A stretch of 62,892 nt of DNA, the filler included, from Choristocarpus tenellus KU-1152 (taxonomy: Eukaryota; Protista; Phaeophyceae), in assembly GCA_964200185.2 (NCBI GenBank). It is 9 parts of 9 records of this genome, joined end to end, with 100 filler letters (N's around TTAATTAATTAA, not from the genome) between each part and the next. Parts side by side here need not be neighbours in the genome. Positions count along the whole stretch, not along the records: positions 48,511 to 60,044 come from CAXNAD020002273.1; 8 more parts are not named here. One strand, 5' to 3'. The notes beneath the pieces are model-generated. The model ran no database searches. It saw nothing but the letters and a program-made list of their open reading frames with translations, and had not been told where the DNA came from. Below, in pieces: positions 47,097-60,044 of this stretch. The position numbers and the translations under genes were made by a program. Each line of letters opens with the position of its first letter. The stretch's first letter is position 1.

Positions 47097-48631
47097 ATAC
47101 AAGCAAGAGGAAGCAGCTGTATCCCAATTGACAATCTTTGTTTTTTGCTTGCAGAGCAGAATACTCATGGACTTTTACTTTGGAGGGGAACGCCTTTTAT
47201 CACTGTTTCATTGAACCCTGTTGGTCTTGTATCCACAAGATCCATTGTTCTTGCCCCTATATAATCCTGGGACCTGGTCAAGGTGGGACCTAAGGTGCAC
47301 CTTGCCATAGGACAGATACGAAGGGGTGCAAAAGGTTGTTGATGTGAGACTCCTGGATGAATGCACTTCTTTATGCTGTTCGGGATATTATCCCCAAGGT
47401 TAAGGAAGGGGTTGAGGTCATTTCACATGTATGGTGTAGTGAAGATGCATTGTTGGGGATCATGACTCAGGGATCATTCTAGAGTCTCGCACTAGGTATG
47501 CTCATGTAGGAAAACCTACTCTTTTTGCCCAAAAGGATAAATCTGGACACATGCAGGTGTTGTGGTTGTCATCTCAGATACAAACCCATGACACTGTTAT
47601 TTGTATAGGAGGAACACCAAAACCACACACCATTGCCCCTTGAGAAGACCCTGACATGCTTAGCCATCATTGCTTCCTGTAGGTGGCTCCATTGTCCGAG
47701 GTTCAATTTGAACTTGTCATTTGCCTTCAGTTAATGGCAACATCAACTTTCTCACCTCATTAGCCCACAAGAGTTGAGCAAAGATGGACTAGTTCGATTC
47801 TATAGGTAGGGAATTCCTCAAACTAGTCAACCTGTGACTCGAGCCAAGACCTACACTAGTACCTTGCCAAACGGTATCATGCCTGTGACCGTGGGCCCTG
47901 CAACTATCCATCCTGTCACTTCATTGATCACAGTGCATACCCATGACTTTTTTGGTCCTGGGAAAGACTGGGTGCATCTTTCTACGATATCATACATCAA
48001 GCATCTTCAAATTCTCGAAAGGGAGTCAACTCTGACAGGTTGAAGTCACTCTGTTCAATAGCAGTCATATCATGCTAGGGCTTTACATTGCAGCAGCCTT
48101 CAGATGGTTTCACAGAAAGCCAGTGGCGTAACTACCGTATCTACAGCAACCTCAATTGGGTAGCCTTAGTCTAAACAAGTTGAGTGGTCGATGCCCTCTT
48201 TGTAAGCATCACATGCTTTACTAAGCCAAGGAGAGGCCTACTCTACATGAACTGCTTAAAACAAGGAAGACCTTACAGCCGCCTGCAACAACCCCATACT
48301 AGTGTAGCAGCATGACACCTCCAACACAATGAGCACGACATACCCACAACAGCCTTTCTATACATATTACTCCCCCCCCCCTACTTGATGGTTATGGGTG
48401 TATCAGGTAANNNNNNNNNNNNNNNNNNNNNNNNNNNNNNNNNNNNNNNNNNNNTTAATTAATTAANNNNNNNNNNNNNNNNNNNNNNNNNNNNNNNNNN
48501 NNNNNNNNNNACGTCGGATGGATACTGTAAATGCACTTTTTCTTTTTTTGGCCCAAATGGACACCCTGGTGTAGCCCCCCCCCCCCCTCCCAGATACTTT
48601 GGGTCACCATGCGACTGTGAGCCTCCCATCT

Positions 48632-48815
48632 GGCTCAAAGTATCTTGGGGAGGGGGGCGGGGTCTACACCAGGGTGTCCATTCGGCCCCTGAATAGGAGA
48701 AGTACGCTTACATTTTCTATCCAACGAATGCAACCAAATTCGCCAAAAAATCACGACATGGAAAAATGGATCTTGAATGGACAACCGTCACCCCCCCCCC
48801 CAGATACTTTGCGCG
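48632..48815. mobile_element. MITE family B, full copy next to a partial copy at 48511-48605
   Basis: GGCTCAAAGTATCTTGGGG...CCCCCCAGATACTTTG. Confidence 0.85.
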
Positions 48816-50971: not shown

Positions 50972-51790
50972 TATTATACATTATTATGACCTCTGGCATT
51001 TTGCAGATGTGCCAGGGGGAAAACTAATGAAAATTATTAACAGGTCTGAAAAATGCCTAAAGAACTAACAGTTGTCACAAAAGTGAAAAACGTGAATCTA
51101 TTTCCTATTTTACTACTACATATCTATGTTGTACTACTGCCTTCCTGTGTCTCAAACCTATTACTGTATCCCAGGGCGAGGAGCTAGGGAAGCATCCCAT
51201 GAATCTAATAAACCCCTCCTTGCCCAACTCCATGGTGACTCCATTTAAAACGCATGACCCGTCTAGCTAGGGCTACTTGCGTTGTGACTGAGACTATCTG
51301 GCTTAGGCGGGATTTGACGGCACCTTCCTGCTGTAGCCCCCAATTCCTCTCCCCCCTACTGCTTGTGTAGCTAGCCCATCCAGGAAACGTTCTGCTTGCT
51401 TGCCGAGATGCCCAAAACTTTCCACCACGAGGGTGTTGAGGATATAATTACGAGGGTCAAAAGAGCCCTCGTAGTGGGTGTACTTTCATGCCTCAGCTGC
51501 AGCAGCAGCAGCACCATTGCTGGTGGATGAGTATGGGAGGGGAGAGGTTGCTTGTACTTCCGCGAACATAACATCAAGTAGAAGGACCTTGTCCCGGTAG
51601 GGGGCTGATCCCGCGTCTGCAAGGGTCCCTGCATGGAAGACTAGATCCATGCAGAAATTCCTGTCGACTGTGAAGGGGTTACCATCCTCCGTAGTGCAAG
51701 GGAAGCCAATCCCCTTGCATAATTAGCTGAGGCGTTTCACCATAGAGGGTGTGTTGTTGCACCTGGCCTCCTGCCCTGGGGAGGGTGTAG
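50972..51790 (-). mobile_element. 5'-truncated CRE/R2-group non-LTR retrotransposon (restriction-like endonuclease domain plus 3' UTR)
   Basis: Minus frame reads GNPFTVDRNFCMDLV...VLLLDVMF...EA*KYTHY...LVVESFGHLG...SVTTQVALARRVMRFK, the RLE PD..D..K..Y..ESFG pattern. 3' tail ATAATAAT; premature stop present. Confidence 0.8.
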
Positions 51791-51996
51791 GCATGTCTGG
51801 TATCGACACAAACCACTGAACAGACCAACAACAAAAAATAGGGACTAACCTGTATCTTTTTTGAGTAATACGTACGTACAAGTCTCAGTCTGTGTTACAT
51901 GTTTTCAGCATTGAGTGACAAGAAACTCTTCATGCAGGGTTTGCCCATGACGATATAACTCTTGTGGGAGTGTTCAGTGACAAAAAAATCACCCTA

Positions 51997-52426
51997 TGTG
52001 GAATGCAGGTTGTCTCTTATCATCTCATTATTGCCACATATGTCATATACCATCATACCGATTTAGGTTATTTTCTGAGAACTCCGGTTTAACTATGTGG
52101 AGGATCTTCGGAAGGATAGGTTTCCGTGACTTCCCGTAACGTCTCTTCACGAACACATTTTTCCGAAGGCTATTCTCATATATCTGAATGGTTTCTTTTC
52201 TGAAACCCATCCGAACCATGATCCTCTCCACTTCCCCAGTCTCTCCACAATTTTCTGCATTTCCATGCAGTCTTCCACTTGTCCAGCCTTAATCTTGTCC
52301 TCCATGTTACGGTTCATCTTGGTTCATCTTGGTTCATCTTGGCTCATCTGGTCCGTCTTGCCTGATGATTCTCTTCACCACTCTTGTCTAAGTGAACCAC
52401 ACCCCCACAGATTCATACGATTCATA
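51997..52426 (+). mobile_element. LTR-like left arm of a large inverted repeat
   Basis: TGTGGAAT...GATTCATA followed by T TGGGGACACCG (PBS-like). Reverse complement of 52537-52930; contains a GGTTCATCTT tandem expansion. Confidence 0.85.
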
Positions 52427-52431
52427 TTGGG

Positions 52432-52535
52432 GACACCGTAACCAGGTGGTTAAGGTACAAGCTTGTTGAAGGTACAAGCTTGTTAAGTTTGTGTGATTCG
52501 CGTGTGAGGGAGTTCGAATCTCATCGGTGTCGCCA
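52432..52535 (+). pseudogene. Full-length degenerate tRNA-Ser-derived sequence with encoded CCA
   Basis: Acceptor GACACCG/CGGTGTC-G-CCA, D-loop GTGGTTAAGG, T-loop GTTCGAATC. Internal ~17-nt duplication (AAGGTACAAGCTTGTT); anticodon reads GTT here versus GCT at 37168. Confidence 0.85.
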
Positions 52536-52536
52536 A

Positions 52537-52930
52537 TATGAATCATATGAATCTGTGGTGGCTTGGTTCACTTAGACAAGAGTGGTAAGAGAATCACCAG
52601 GCAAGACGAACCATAACCGAGAATGACGAGATTAGGTTGAACAAGTGCAAGACTGCAAGGAATTACAAAATATTGTGGAGAGACTGAGGGAGTGGAGAGA
52701 ATCACTGTTCAGATGGGTTTCAGAAAAGAAACCCTTCAGAGATCGGAGATCCGCCTTCGGAAAAAAGTGTTCATGAAGAGACGTTACGGGAAGTCACGGA
52801 AAAATATCCTTCTGAAGATCCTTCACATAGTTGATCCGAAGTTCTCAGAACCTAAGAACCTAAATCGGTAGGACGCTATATGGCATATATGGAAATAATG
52901 ACATGATAACAGATAGCCCTGCTCTCCACA
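52537..52930 (-). mobile_element. LTR-like right arm of the inverted repeat
   Basis: Minus strand reads TGTGGAGAGCAGGG...GATTCATA T TGGCGACACCG. Confidence 0.85.
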
Positions 52931-55900
52931 CTTGCAGCAATTGATCGAGTAGTTTAAAAATGGAGGGAAACGCAGCATAAATGCGGAGGAGGCTGCTGCC
53001 TGTATGAATATTATGTGTTTGAACTTATTCTTCTCTTCATAGAAACCTGTTTTCGATTATCCAATCCTGTATGGCGACCATAGCCTATTATACACAACCT
53101 ATACTATCCCATCATATCTGTCAATATGCCACAAAAAACGTCAACAATAAGACGTCAACGCCAATAGGCGACTCTACCGCAAGATTCGAGGGAGGAAGGG
53201 ACCAACGAGGGATGGGACCATGGCATCTTCATGTACAGCCCATTCATTTGACTGCCTCAGAAGCACTGCCACTCCTTACATGGCAAGAGTTGCCAGGAGG
53301 GTGGTGTGCAAGTGACCAAGCTTGAGCGAATCTCCTGGAAGCCTGGGAGTAGCAGGAAATGGCATTGAGATGGGAGCATGGCATCTTCATCCACAGTCGA
53401 TTTGTTGTTGAAAGCTGCCTCAGAAAAACTGCTACCACTGCAATGGATTGAATTACCAGAAGGATGGGGGTGGGGAGGGAACAAGCTCAAGCAAATTTCC
53501 TGGAAGCTTGGGAGGAGCAGGAAAGGGCATGGAAAAAACTGCACAAACATCTCTAAAACTTCCTTTTCAAGAAGGTGTTGAGGGTGCCTGGCAAACAGCT
53601 CAAACGGGTGAGGGCATCCGTCATACAGCTCTTTGAAACCGAAACCAGGAAGATGGAACACTGTCTAGGGATCAAACTGGTTTCTACCAACAACTCGTGA
53701 AAGGGCTTTTGAGATAGAAAGGATAAGACAGAGTTAGTTCCTTTGAAACATCCACGACAAATCTGGCAGGCTACGGATGGAGCTAGCAATCATCAAGAAA
53801 CAGTGGAGGCGATACATTGGTGTGCTCCATAATGACAAGTTGGTCAACGTCAACCCCCGTATGTTGCAGCCCTCGACCAACGATCTACTTGCATTAATAC
53901 TTATGTTTCTTCTTCTCATCATTAGTCTGAGGGTCCCAGACCTGTGGTCCAAAGGCAGTCAGAAGAAAAAGGGCAATACCACATAGGAGGCGATCAATAG
54001 GGGGTGGGGCAACACTTGAGCAGCTTTTGTAGGGTAGCATTTCTGCTGAAGATGCAGGCATTGTGTCCAAGACCCAATGAGGTTTGTTCAGGACGATGGT
54101 GGTAATTGTGAAAGTGGCCTCATCTTTGAACTGATCGTGTTGGAGCTGATTGTGGAGACCCTGTCCTTTGACCTCCCAATACGTTCGAAGACATTATGCA
54201 GTTCCGGGCTTTGGGCTATCACTAAAAGAACACTGGCACATTTGTTTACTTTGGAGTCACCGTAAGTGATGAAGTTGCAATAATATCACTTGAGCTGATT
54301 CTAATGCTCAAGATCGAAGTGCCTGAGGTTCTGTCATATGGGTTTGTGACATGAACACTCTGCCAGGTCCACCAGCTCAGGCACTTCGCTCCCACCATTT
54401 CAAATTCCTTCTATGCCACATCGAATTTCTCAAACAGGAACACCCCAATCACACCTTGTCCTAAAAGGATGCCTTTGAGAAGACTGGGTGTGAGAGTATG
54501 CAGGTGATTGTGCAAAAACAGAGACTCCTATTTGCAGGGTGAGTTACATGGATAGTGGATGAGCGACTTCCAAAGGTATTGATGTTTGGGGAGTTTGCTG
54601 ATGGAGAGCGGAAGAAGGCAAGCAGGAGAAGAACATCCACCATGGTGGAGGTGCCTGCAAGACAACCTCGCGAAATTTGGTACCACAGTTGAGGGATGGG
54701 GCACAAAGGGTACCAAACCAACACAGATGTTATGAGTGTGTGGTTGAAAGAACAATGAGCTTCATGAGCAAGTGGCATATTCGAAGGGGAAGCTATGATA
54801 GGTGATGTATGACATTGCTCAAGCAGCACCTGAGGCAGCCCAAGCAGATCAAGGCACAACATACATACTCACCAGTCTGCTGAATGGCGCTTTCTCATTA
54901 TCTTTCTCTTTTTGGGTTGATTTTCTTATGCCCCTCTCTCCTTTCCTTTCTTCTCTCTTTGTGTGACATGTGACTTACGAGTGGTGTTTGGACTGGATGG
55001 ATGTGATGTGACACTAACGTTTTTTCTTTTCCCCGTTTCCCTAAGGATCTGACTATGTGTGACAGTGCTATGGAGGTCCTATCTCAAGTATTTTTTGACA
55101 GTGCTTTTCATCGAGTTTCTCTTCACTACCCTTTTTTAATACAGCCACCCCAATCTCTTATTTCCTCTTTTCTCTTCTATAGTCTTGCTATTTTCTCAGG
55201 CAGTGCGTACTGCCTTCCTCTGACAACCCCTGCAGCGAATGTGAAGAACAAAAATATTTTTTTTACTTCCAATTAAATATTCTTCACAATCGTGTTGCGT
55301 TTATAAACGATAACATCTGCACTGTGTTCTCGAGCATTATTGTATCATGCGTCGAACTTAATATTAACATTAATTTGCAGAAATCAACCAATGGATAGTC
55401 TACGCTGTACGATTTGGATTTCACGGAATGGACATGAATAGGGATGGGAGCATGATGTTCAATTTTTCGGAATGATGGTAATGTCCACTGTGCAGATCAT
55501 TTGAGGATGTGGTGACAGTCACTGTTCTGGAGAAGGAACAATGTACTATGGCTAAGATATGATGTTCCCAAGCATTTTCTGGACAGCGGACATAATACAG
55601 CAATTGTGCTGAGCATTGCCATTACAACACGCAATACATGCAAGGCTACACATGCTTGTACAGCAAATGGACTCAGGTGTTACATGGACAAAGGTTCTCC
55701 AAACGCTGTCCTGATAAAAGAATGTTACAGAGCAAATCGGCCCTAACCTTGTCCTTGGATGCTATTAGTAACAGACATTATGGGAAAATTTTAGCTGAAT
55801 GTCCCAAGGTAGTAGGTGGGGTGGAAACATATTTAAAGTATCGCAGATTCCTGACAGATGCAAGATCAATGTCCCCTCATTATAACAATTTCAGCGTGAA

Positions 55901-56461
55901 AAACCACCCACTATCCTTGTAGCATCTACACAGATAATAACCACTCTATGTAACCATCCAATATGACAGTGACATATGAAGTAGCAGCTGTCTTAGAGAG
56001 ATACTTCTCCCAGTCAGCTTCACCTCCCCCTTCCGCCATAAATGCTCTTTCAGCACAGTGGAACAGGGTCATTCCTCCACATTACTTATCTCTCCATGAC
56101 TGGCAGTGTGTAGTGCAGGAACAGTTGCAATGTGGAGTGGACGCAAGTTCAAAGTAGAGATCATCTACCCTCCTGCACCACATGCTCAACTCATTTCACT
56201 ACAGTTCAACTTTGGAGAACCCACAGTCAACAATTTCTGCCACAGAAGAATATAAACGGTTCTAAGGAATCCTACAAGTGAGCATGATTGTTCCTCTACA
56301 TATTTTCAATGAATCAAGAGTAGCTCACTGGACAGGTGCATGTGGCAGTGAAGTACATGGTCAATAATGCACATAAAAAGTCCAAAGGATGAAAGTAACC
56401 ACACAATTTTTCAGAGCAGAAAGCAGCTGATAACCCACTCAGTCCTTGCACAGGTCACAGA

Positions 56462-56465
<4 letters not shown>

Positions 56466-56498
<33 letters not shown>

Positions 56499-56574
56499 GC
56501 GTGTGCGTGTGTGTGTGTGCGTGTGTGCATGTGTGTTTGTTTGTGCGTGTGCGTGTGCGTGTGTGCATGTGTGT
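56466..56574. repeat. (TG)n/(TGCG) compound microsatellite just 3' of the glyoxalase stop codon
   Basis: Direct reading. Confidence 0.95.
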
Positions 56575-56597
56575 AAATGGACTGAAACATTGAAGGG

Positions 56598-59500
56598 TCA
56601 CGAAGTCTCCAGCACAGCTCCCCGGAGTATCAGTTGCACATGGTACCCATCAGGGTCACGAAACCGAAGGACTTTCCCATCAGGCATCCCTGGCTCTGCC
56701 AACTCTTCACAACCTCGTTCCCTCAATGTATTGGCAATACCTTCAATGTCATCCACAATAAAACCGACATGCCCAAAGCCCTGTTGAGAGCAGATTGCAT
56801 GGGGGCATGGGGGAATAGAAAGGGCTGATCTTGTGGGCCTTGTGGGCAAAAAATGAAGGCTACTTACTGGGGTTTCATCCTTGACAATCCAGAGTACTTC
56901 GAAGAAGCATAGCAAAAAAGGAGGGTGATGACATTGCAGGTTGTAACCATGGCACAAGAAATTCCTACAATAAGGACGTGTTAGGTTGCTTTCACAACAA
57001 GGGCACCATACAAGTACTCCAAGAAAACTGAAGTCAGCATTGCATCATTTGCAGAGACAGGAGAAACATCCTCGATAAAACATTATGGTACTTGCAACAC
57101 TTGTTAACTGCATTGCACCAGAAACGAGGAACAGCTTACCTTGTATGGGACAATTTAGCTGAAACCTCACGTGAATTCTAGTGGTAGGAAATCTTCACCT
57201 ATCAAGGAAAAATAGTTAGCCCTTTCCGTATTTTGAATATCTACCGCAAAACTACCAAAACCCCAGAAGCATGTACACTTATATTTAGTGTATGTGATTA
57301 ACTCCCCTGTACTCCTTAGTCCTTACACTTACAAAGCACACCAAGCATTCGTTAAGCATGTTTCCTATACAAAAATCATAAAGGTACTCTGTTTTCAGTT
57401 GAGATGCTGGCTCACCAAGGGTTCCGAGTTTCCATCATGGTACATAAAGTCTGGCTGGTTTTCTGTCCCATGATTGTGGGTCAGCTCCAGTACAGGTGCA
57501 AATGAACACGTCATCTGCTCATAAGCCTCGGTAGATGCTGGCAAAGGCCAGGTTGCCCGTTCCTCAGGTGAGAGGGACTGGAGGAAGTACAGAGAGAAGT
57601 CACTGAAGTGTTTCTCACAAACCTGGAAGAAATAGAGATAAGGAGAGGACATAAAATGGTCATATTCGCGTATCTTCTTTAAAAAACATATCCATCATAT
57701 CACTCTGACTAAAAAACATTCCATTAGAGGCTTAGGCATTGGCTTTCAAATATTTGTAGTCCTAGTGTTGTGCGAGACAAATTGAGTCAGAGGTGACCTA
57801 CATAGCAGCCCATCGGTTCACGTTAACACTATGTACCACAGACATGGGCTAAACGTATTTGAGAAGGTCATGACATACCCAACACCTCATGTAACATGTA
57901 GTGGGCACAGATACATACAACCTATCTCCACCATCCATCTCAAGTGTGCCCCCAGGAACTTACCAAGGTCATACCCAGACCTGCAGGCCCAGTATAGAAG
58001 TCCAAGGAGGTCCTGAAGTCCTTGACTCTGAGCATTGTCTGGCCTAGGTGATAAGGCTCAGAGTGCCCAGCCGCGGCATCTCGGGATACGATCTCTATCC
58101 AGTAGCCATCAGGGTCATATGCAAAGGCAAGTCCTTTCATCCGGCCCTCATCTTTATATGCACAAAATTGAGGTGCAAGGTGCCATTGGAGAGAGAGGAC
58201 AGAGTAGACACAGCAAAAGGACAATTACGTTAGTCAACTTTGCCAACACCTAGCTAGACATGGATCCTGCAATAGTTTCCGTCCTGTAATACCCACAAGC
58301 AAGCGCACTTCTGTGTTCAGCACAAAACCATATCTCAACAGGGCAATCCAAACACAAGAGGAGGTCTCAAGGTCAGCTCTTGAAAGGCGTATGTGCTTAA
58401 TATCCTGTGTGTACTCTATGACTACTACCACTATCTCAACCCCCCCAAAAAGCAATTCAAAGTGGACCCAACCATTCAGTCCATGGATACAAATAACAAC
58501 TGACAATGTCAACACCCAGCCCCTTCAATGATTCCATACTTCAAAATCAGAAACAGCCTCTGGACTCTGTAATAATATACACTACTCACAGAAATGTTGC
58601 AACAGTCAATACTAATCACCCTACCACCTGTTGTTGACACTATCAGTCACCTTGACCACAATCAGGAAAGCTCAATTCCACCTGACACCCTGAATGTTTG
58701 TCCCACCCTCTCCCCCTTTTAGGCATGTTGTTTCCATATACTGGTGGTGTGCATCCTACCTGGTTTCTTCTTGAACTCCACTCTTGCATTCTCCAGAATC
58801 GCACTTGCTGCATAGACATCGTCTGTCAAAAAGGCCAGGTGGCCAAATCCTCGCTTTGGTTCATCATTACCGCTGGAGTAGCGCAGGTCAGGGTCTTTCT
58901 CCACCCCATGAGTGTGCTGGAGCTCAATGCATGAATACTTCATGTCAAAGAGAAGCTTGTGGGCCTGTTGGATCAGGCAATGAGCTACAGTCAATGCAAT
59001 ATGCGGGATTGATTGGGTCGTCGACTGGATACGAAGGACACCGAGGCGTAACTTTGTGGTCAAACAGGGCATGAGGAAGTCAAATCAAAGGTGAGATACA
59101 CCCAGATAAGCCTCAACAACAGCAGCAACACGTACATTGTAACACAGCAAGCAGTCATAGCAACACCTGTGAAAAGGTTATCTCTCTCAAATTTCCTCCC
59201 CGGATCACCCCAGAACACCTCTGCGGTTCCCGGTGTAGGCCATGTATCTCCCTCCCTTAACGAGGCGACGTAGTAATTACTTCGACCCAAGGCTGGGAGG
59301 TGGTAGAAGTCGACCAGTTGCATACCATAGTTCTCCTCGTAATACCTCAAACTGGCAGATGGATCCTGTCGATGAATGCAGAATCATGGGCAATGTTACA
59401 AGATTGTGTAGTCCTAAGATGTACGAGTTTGACTCTAAACACAGGAAATTTCGGGAGGCCTTTTGGGTTGTATGTTTCATGACCCGTTCACAATCAGCAA

Positions 59501-59964: not shown

Positions 59965-60000
59965 CAGTGGAGCAAGTGTCCTTCACTTTCAATAAGTGAA

Positions 60001-60044
60001 TGTATGTATGTATGTATGTATGTATGTATGTATGTATGTATGTA
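60001..60044. repeat. (TGTA)n microsatellite at contig end
   Basis: Direct reading. Confidence 0.95.

Follow-up and report, generated by a model that had tools for sequence, protein, structure and literature searches.

A palindromic unit with LTR-like arms around a CCA-bearing tRNA copy in Choristocarpus tenellus: a candidate relic of aberrant reverse transcription

A 934-bp non-coding palindromic unit was found at positions 51997-52930 of a 62,892-nucleotide stretch of DNA (the window) from Choristocarpus tenellus KU-1152, within the part that comes from CAXNAD020002273.1 (hereafter the piece). Two diverged, LTR-like arms lie in opposite orientation on either side of a tRNA-like sequence that carries a CCA tail, and the homology between the two sides ends exactly where the tRNA acceptor stem ends. 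With about even confidence, we consider the unit to be the decayed remains of a product of aberrant reverse transcription, made by a tRNA-primed LTR retroelement. Its present function, if any, is not indicated by the data.

Structure of the palindromic unit

The unit comprises the following features:

51997..52426, + strand (read 5'->3'): left arm, LTR-like repeat; starts TGTGG; possible ends CCACA at 52405-52409 or CA at 52423-52424; summed contig depth 500-1150 vs ~20 in the unique flanks
52311..52360, + strand: 10-nt tandem repeat GGTTCATCTT x5; left arm only; accounts for the 38-nt difference in arm length
52410..52427, + strand: 9-nt unit twice (GATTCATAC GATTCATAT); inner end of the left arm, mirrored at 52536-52553
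52428..52438, + strand: left PBS-like core TGG-G-GACACCG; 52432-52438 double as the tRNA 5' acceptor strand; 10/11 bases match the right-side PBS
52432..52532, + strand: tRNA-like spacer, class II type; Ser-like D-loop GGTGGTTAAGG, T-loop GTTCGAATC, discriminator G; RF00005 34.1 bits
52452..52484, + strand: perfect 17-nt tandem duplication (100% matches) in the anticodon arm of the tRNA copy
52533..52535, + strand: CCA tail of the tRNA copy, following the discriminator G
52518..52535, - strand: 18-nt primer-binding-site equivalent TGGCGACACCGATGAGAT, adjoining the inner end of the right arm
52537..52930, - strand (read 5'->3'): right arm, LTR-like repeat; closes the unit as ...CTCCACA on the + strand; summed contig depth 430-1600 vs ~22 in the flank

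A repeat search returned four collinear inverted-repeat blocks that tile the unit (52008-52072/52854-52918, 52068-52289/52634-52855, 52349-52375/52587-52613 and 52377-52438/52525-52586), and the two arms proved to be reverse complements of each other, with 86% identity over the aligned bases plus a 38-nt gap. Once the right arm was reverse-complemented, its MAFFT alignment with the left arm contained 345 matches, 28 transitions and 29 transversions, as well as 44 gap columns, most of which belong to the single 38-nt gap opposite the (GGTTCATCTT)x5 stretch of the left arm. The near equality of transitions and transversions is unusual for plain neutral decay. Both arms open with TGTGGA, and their inner ends read ...CCACAGATTCATA(C/T)GATTCATAT or, in a longer form, ...CCACA GATTCATA(C/T) GATTCATAT, followed in both arms by TGG-(G/C)-GACACCG. 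These results bear out the sequence-only reading, made before the present analysis, in which the arms were described as diverged reverse complements with TGTGGA starts and TGG(G/C)GACACCG beyond their inner ends. When folded as single-stranded DNA, the 934 nt formed one long hairpin of -330 kcal/mol, against -100 +/- 7 kcal/mol for shuffled sequences (z = -34.6).

The earlier caveat that no target-site duplication is evident was confirmed as well: the unit is flanked by CCCTA on one side and CTTGC on the other, so that the 4-6 bp duplication typical of an LTR element is absent and an integrase-type insertion is unsupported. The unit has no coding capacity, and the ORFs in and around it gave no Pfam hit for a recombinase or reverse transcriptase (RT). 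The ten nearby ORFs contained no gag, RT or integrase in the Pfam search, which detected a glyoxalase domain only, and a protein search with a 62-aa ORF of the left arm for ORFs on other copies gave no candidate. Two further classes of origin were considered. A DIRS-like origin was set aside since the unit holds neither an internal complementary region (no CCACA-TGTGG junction) nor a recombinase or RT remnant detectable with Pfam, and a Penelope-type pLTR (pseudo-LTR) is not indicated, since the Rfam search of the whole piece found no hammerhead or other RNA in the arms.

Support for the unit in short-read contigs

Palindromes are a known class of artefact, and a chimeric fold-back read that entered the library or the assembly could in principle have generated such a structure. 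The unit was therefore compared with Logan contigs from two runs of the same study, which may share their source with the assembly and thus provide sequence support rather than independent biological replication. Short-read contigs from both runs spanned the two arm-tRNA junctions (52197-52539 and 52513-52736) with 0 differences, and further contigs (51752-52132 and 52714-54000) ran from unique flank into arm. In addition, the arms differ by 14% and by a 38-nt indel, whereas a fold-back read would not yield such divergence. Taken together, the mismatch-free contigs across the junctions and the divergence of the arms exclude a fold-back artefact of reads or assembly, the residual probability of which we regard as negligible. 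The inverted repeat at 51997-52930 is real and old.

Repeat status and common origin of the arms

In run X1, the summed contig depth was ~20-36 in the unique flanks (51808-52009 and 52919-53221) and 430-1600 in the arm bins, with a mirror-symmetric profile; the same ratios were obtained with run X2. The arm depth thus amounts to 25-80 times the depth of the unique flanks, and where the inverted repeat ends on either outer side it drops back to the unique level. Diverged contigs of other arm copies also exist, such as a 547-nt contig that is 84% identical over 52683-52913 and then continues into other sequence. The arm is a bounded, dispersed repeat present in tens of copies, and such a repeat with TG...CA ends is in line with the sequence-only reading.

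Comparison with the other copies revealed the relation of the two arms to each other. Two mirrored sites, 52382/52581 and 52390/52573, have T and A (arm strand) in both arms, where over 90% of the contig depth of the other copies has C and G. At 52236 and 52365, the left arm alone departs from the majority base and the right arm keeps it. Minority bases shared by both arms, together with departures confined to one of them, imply that both arms were made from one template in one event and decayed separately afterwards; the arms are sister copies from a single event.

The repeat status of the arms leads to the question of whether the unit belongs to a foldback/MITE-like or other non-autonomous family, in which long terminal inverted repeats around a tRNA-derived module were moved or copied as a unit. 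Several observations are in line with such a family: terminal inverted repeats are present, the unit lacks coding capacity, the arms occur in tens of copies, and the limits of the family coincide with the ends of the inverted repeat. The bin that covers most of the spacer (52414-52514) reached a depth of 806 vs ~20 in unique sequence, but this bin includes 25 nt of arm end plus the PBS-like sequence, which may account for the value, and the per-site depth close to the arm ends ranges from 260 to 1400; for this reason, the depth of 806 is not taken as proof of a multi-copy spacer. One variant contig, with a joint from 52410 to 52542, contains the arm end with an apparently single 9-nt unit, the PBS and ~8 nt beyond the 18-nt PBS; it hints at a second arm-tRNA junction, although it is too short to rely on. 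On the other side, a target-site duplication is absent, the minority bases common to both arms suit a single, private event of origin better than copying from a master element, and the CCA/TGG inside the palindrome would be left unexplained. We hold a mobile family of this kind to be unlikely, though worth keeping in mind. Contig joints between opposite strands, which could be taken for new junctions, turned out to be alignments of other arm copies switching between the two arms.

A sensitive BLASTN search found no further copy of the unit in the rest of the piece. When the pattern of arm end plus PBS was searched for in metagenome and viral contigs, 50 loci were returned, all of them chance matches of 21-26 nt.

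The tRNA-like spacer

The spacer at 52432-52532 matched the Rfam tRNA model RF00005 over its full length with a score above the gathering score (34.1 bits vs 29; E = 4e-4 for the whole piece on both strands and 6e-6 locally). ARAGORN called no tRNA in the spacer, probably because the perfect 17-nt tandem duplication sits in the anticodon arm. Since this duplication is perfect while the arms are 14% diverged, it points to a later slippage event. The spacer is directly followed by CCA, which by established knowledge is not encoded in nuclear tRNA genes. A sequence that scores as a tRNA and also carries CCA implies an RNA-derived copy of a mature tRNA, and the proposal that the spacer is a complete, CCA-bearing tRNA copy is borne out by the Rfam match and by the position of the CCA.

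As to the isotype, the D-loop, the long variable region, the T-loop and the discriminator G all fit tRNA-Ser, as judged from what is generally known of eukaryotic tRNAs. The anticodon loop, closed by CAAGC/GTTTG, reads TTGTTAA and gives the anticodon GTT, which is not that of Ser. The corresponding loop of Ser-GCU, which we take to be CTGCTAA, is two C>T changes away. The earlier assignment to tRNA-Ser is consistent with the D-loop, the long variable arm and the discriminator, but not with the anticodon; a Ser isotype is plausible, and the primer was probably a tRNA-Ser(GCU)-like molecule.

Arm-tRNA junctions and geometry of the primer-binding site

The two junctions form an unbroken palindrome of the order arm - ATAT - TGG - N - GACACCG ... 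CGGTGTC - N - CCA - ATAT - arm. Read on the - strand, the arm is followed by TAT, TGG C GACACCG ATGAGATTCGAAC and the remainder of the full tRNA complement as far as CGGTGTC, and then by C, CCA, ATA and the inverted arm. As the sequence-only reading had stated, the left PBS core is at the same time the 5' acceptor strand of the tRNA, and on the right the sequence complements the tRNA 3' end exactly. Homology between left and right ends directly past the 7-bp acceptor stem, where the left side continues with TAACCAGG and the right side with ATGAGATT. Such a limit is expected if a 3' end reading ...CGGTGTC annealed to GACACCG in a PBS and was then extended, and it agrees with the idea, already put forward from the sequence, that the halves were joined by way of the acceptor stem, which is self-complementary. 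Had two LTR-PBS ends been ligated instead, 18 nt of PBS would stand on both sides; this is not seen, and the explanation was rejected.

The sole mismatch between the left and right PBS cores lies at 52431, the discriminator position, which is non-palindromic in that G occupies both 52431 and 52532. A G on both sides calls either for a substitution at a later time, which arms 14% diverged make likely enough, or for a base added without template where the tRNA copy ends.

The ends of the arms are consistent with LTRs. Each arm starts with TG (51997-51998 in the left arm) and has CA (52423-52424) 3 nt ahead of TGG, which is the usual LTR-PBS geometry, and the right arm mirrors this arrangement. 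A PBS lies near the arm end, in that TGGCGACACCGATGAGAT (52535-52518, - strand) follows the arm after TAT; there is some circularity in the match of this PBS to the tRNA, which is given by construction, the complement being supplied by the tRNA copy next to it. Taking CCACA (52405-52409) as the alternative end would give a clean TGTGG/CCACA terminal inverted repeat, but would place TGG 18 nt away, which is far for a PBS. On these end motifs and the repeat status, the arms are regarded as putative LTRs.

The geometry of the junctions also bears on whether the repeat inserted twice, independently and in opposite orientation, on the two sides of a tRNA gene or pseudogene, a caveat that had been raised from the sequence. 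LTR elements that target tRNA genes do occur in yeasts and Dictyostelium (PMC5006619), which lends the idea some precedent. Such elements land tens of base pairs from the gene, however, and not flush with it, and two separate insertions are opposed by the CCA, by the base-exact symmetry of the junctions and by the private variants common to both arms. We consider this origin very improbable.

A model for the origin of the unit

An aberrant course of reverse transcription could account for the features described above. Plus-strand strong-stop DNA would be primed at the polypurine tract and would copy U3-R-U5, followed by the first 18 nt of its tRNA primer. Instead of stopping there, synthesis may have run past the 18 nt and copied the primer tRNA all the way to base 1, its 5' end. 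The 3' terminus made in this way, ...CGGTGTC, would then be complementary to GACACCG in its own PBS, since the acceptor stem of a tRNA is self-complementary. This end could fold back, or anneal to a second such molecule, and be extended through TGG and the whole LTR, yielding a product of the form LTR - tRNA copy - inverted LTR, in which each outer end coincides with the LTR's first base (TG). The product would have entered the chromosome without a target-site duplication, and the arms would subsequently have drifted to ~14% divergence. On primer tRNAs, plus-strand synthesis is normally halted by m1A58 and then by m5Um54 as a second stop, and read-through of both stops gives a cDNA that is a dead end for normal strand transfer (PMC8599865). 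The missing target-site duplication suggests capture by repair rather than by integrase, or a later loss of the flanks.

Host DNA repair could instead have made the palindrome. An earlier tRNA-CCA-arm retro-insert (a strong-stop-type cDNA) could have suffered a nearby break, after which the 3' strand folded on the inverted repeat of the acceptor stem and was extended by repair. Short inverted repeats next to breaks can give palindromes, as is well established; the geometry of the junctions would be the same as under self-priming during reverse transcription, and the absent target-site duplication fits an origin by repair. What such a fold-back would not lead one to expect is a stop exactly at the boundary of the repeat family, and yet both arms end at TGTGG, where the depth drops to the unique level. 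Fold-back by host repair is in our judgement decidedly unlikely.

Comparison with known systems

Circular DNA of murine leukemia virus (MLV) that carries a reverse-transcribed tRNA between its LTRs has been described (Colicelli and Goff 1986, J Virol 57:674, as recounted in PMC12220202). According to that account, RT can copy a full tRNA in vivo. The likeness to the Choristocarpus unit lies in a whole primer-type tRNA that was copied by RT and retained beside LTR ends; the MLV circles have direct LTRs and are unintegrated products of a mutant virus in culture, whereas the unit has inverted arms and is chromosomal and old.

For the second step, snap-back DNAs offer a parallel. Minus-strand strong-stop DNA of HIV-1 self-primes on the TAR hairpin, and cauliflower mosaic virus forms hairpin DNAs, likewise by snap-back. 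As proposed for the unit, the nascent cDNA 3' end folds onto a complementary stretch of its own strand and gives an extended hairpin, but folding in these cases takes place at the R/TAR end or at the 5' end of the template, whereas in the unit it would have occurred at the acceptor stem within the PBS, and the result is fixed in the genome.

A strong-stop-DNA model for the origin of tRNA-derived SINEs was reportedly put forward by Ohshima, Okada and colleagues (PNAS, 1993). In the unit, the right half has the order of parts that this model proposes, with the tRNA followed by CCA and the complement of the LTR 3' region. Unlike the proposed structure, the unit has a mirrored upstream arm and is devoid of a LINE-type tail, a simple-repeat tail and a T-run terminator. 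DIRS-like elements and foldback/MITE families resemble the unit in their long inverted terminal repeats, and DIRS elements also insert without a target-site duplication; these families, however, have no CCA-tailed tRNA at the axis and no TGG adjoining the arm end, and the unit for its part has no recombinase or RT remnant. Our literature search found no description of an LTR-tRNA-inverted LTR structure, and the matches to the PBS string that it returned were unrelated primers.

If the proposed origin is correct, the locus would be a genomic fossil of two RT errors, namely read-through of a whole primer tRNA and self-priming of strong-stop DNA, for which the evidence otherwise comes mostly from cultured cells or in vitro experiments. 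It would indicate that such products can reach the germ line, and would document in nature the tRNA-CCA-LTR intermediate from which tRNA-derived SINEs have been proposed to originate. Palindromes of this length and type are potential sources of hairpin RNA as well as fragile sites, and the unit, if transcribed, would yield a long hairpin RNA. Since it is one decayed copy and shows no sign of function, its biological weight is small at present. The idea of a propagating non-autonomous element or an siRNA source, raised from the sequence, is conjectural. A bolder extension is that hairpins of the type LTR > whole tRNA < LTR are a recurrent product of this retroelement family, arising each time RT fails to stop on a primer tRNA that is under-modified and then self-primes at the acceptor stem, and that they make up an undescribed, dead-on-arrival class of retro-insertions supplying long-hairpin RNA and siRNA against the parent element; we rate this extension as doubtful and speculative.

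Sequence surroundings of the unit

Upstream of the unit, the region 51000-51800 was found to be a hyper-abundant repeat, with a summed depth of up to ~176,000 vs ~20 for unique sequence in run X1, which corresponds to thousands of copies. This repeat showed 80-90% likeness to sequences of a second organism (run X3) and had no Rfam or Pfam match. Within the unit, the inner 80 nt of the left arm (52331-52413), comprising part of the 10-nt repeat and the stretch before CCACA, also matched a hyper-abundant repeat (depth 40,000-100,000), whereas their mirror in the right arm had a depth of only ~300. In one contig, an end resembling 52385 is linked to sequence resembling 51000, and 52331-52413 may be part of the abundant upstream family.

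Downstream, the region 53211-53533 is a tandem duplication with a period of ~160 bp, in which three collinear pairs are 72-85% identical and the depth is 170-335 vs ~20. A (GT)n/(GCGT)n microsatellite lies at 56453-56582, and an (ATGT)n run lies at the right edge of the piece (59992-60043). Between them, an intron-containing glyoxalase I/VOC-family gene was identified on the - strand (56598-59350); its exon ORFs carry PF00903, and their best database matches are 60-74% identical. Two of its exons are common to metagenome contigs of distant relatives, with ~68% DNA identity and a shorter intron there. At the left edge of the piece, 48512-48726 is an inverted repeat rich in G/C homopolymers, with 81-nt arms that are 77% complementary and nested 32-nt arms; it gave weak, sub-threshold matches to the miRNA hairpin models mir-4433 and mir-4716. 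CpG is depleted over the piece as a whole (observed/expected 0.43), which points to a eukaryotic genome with methylation.
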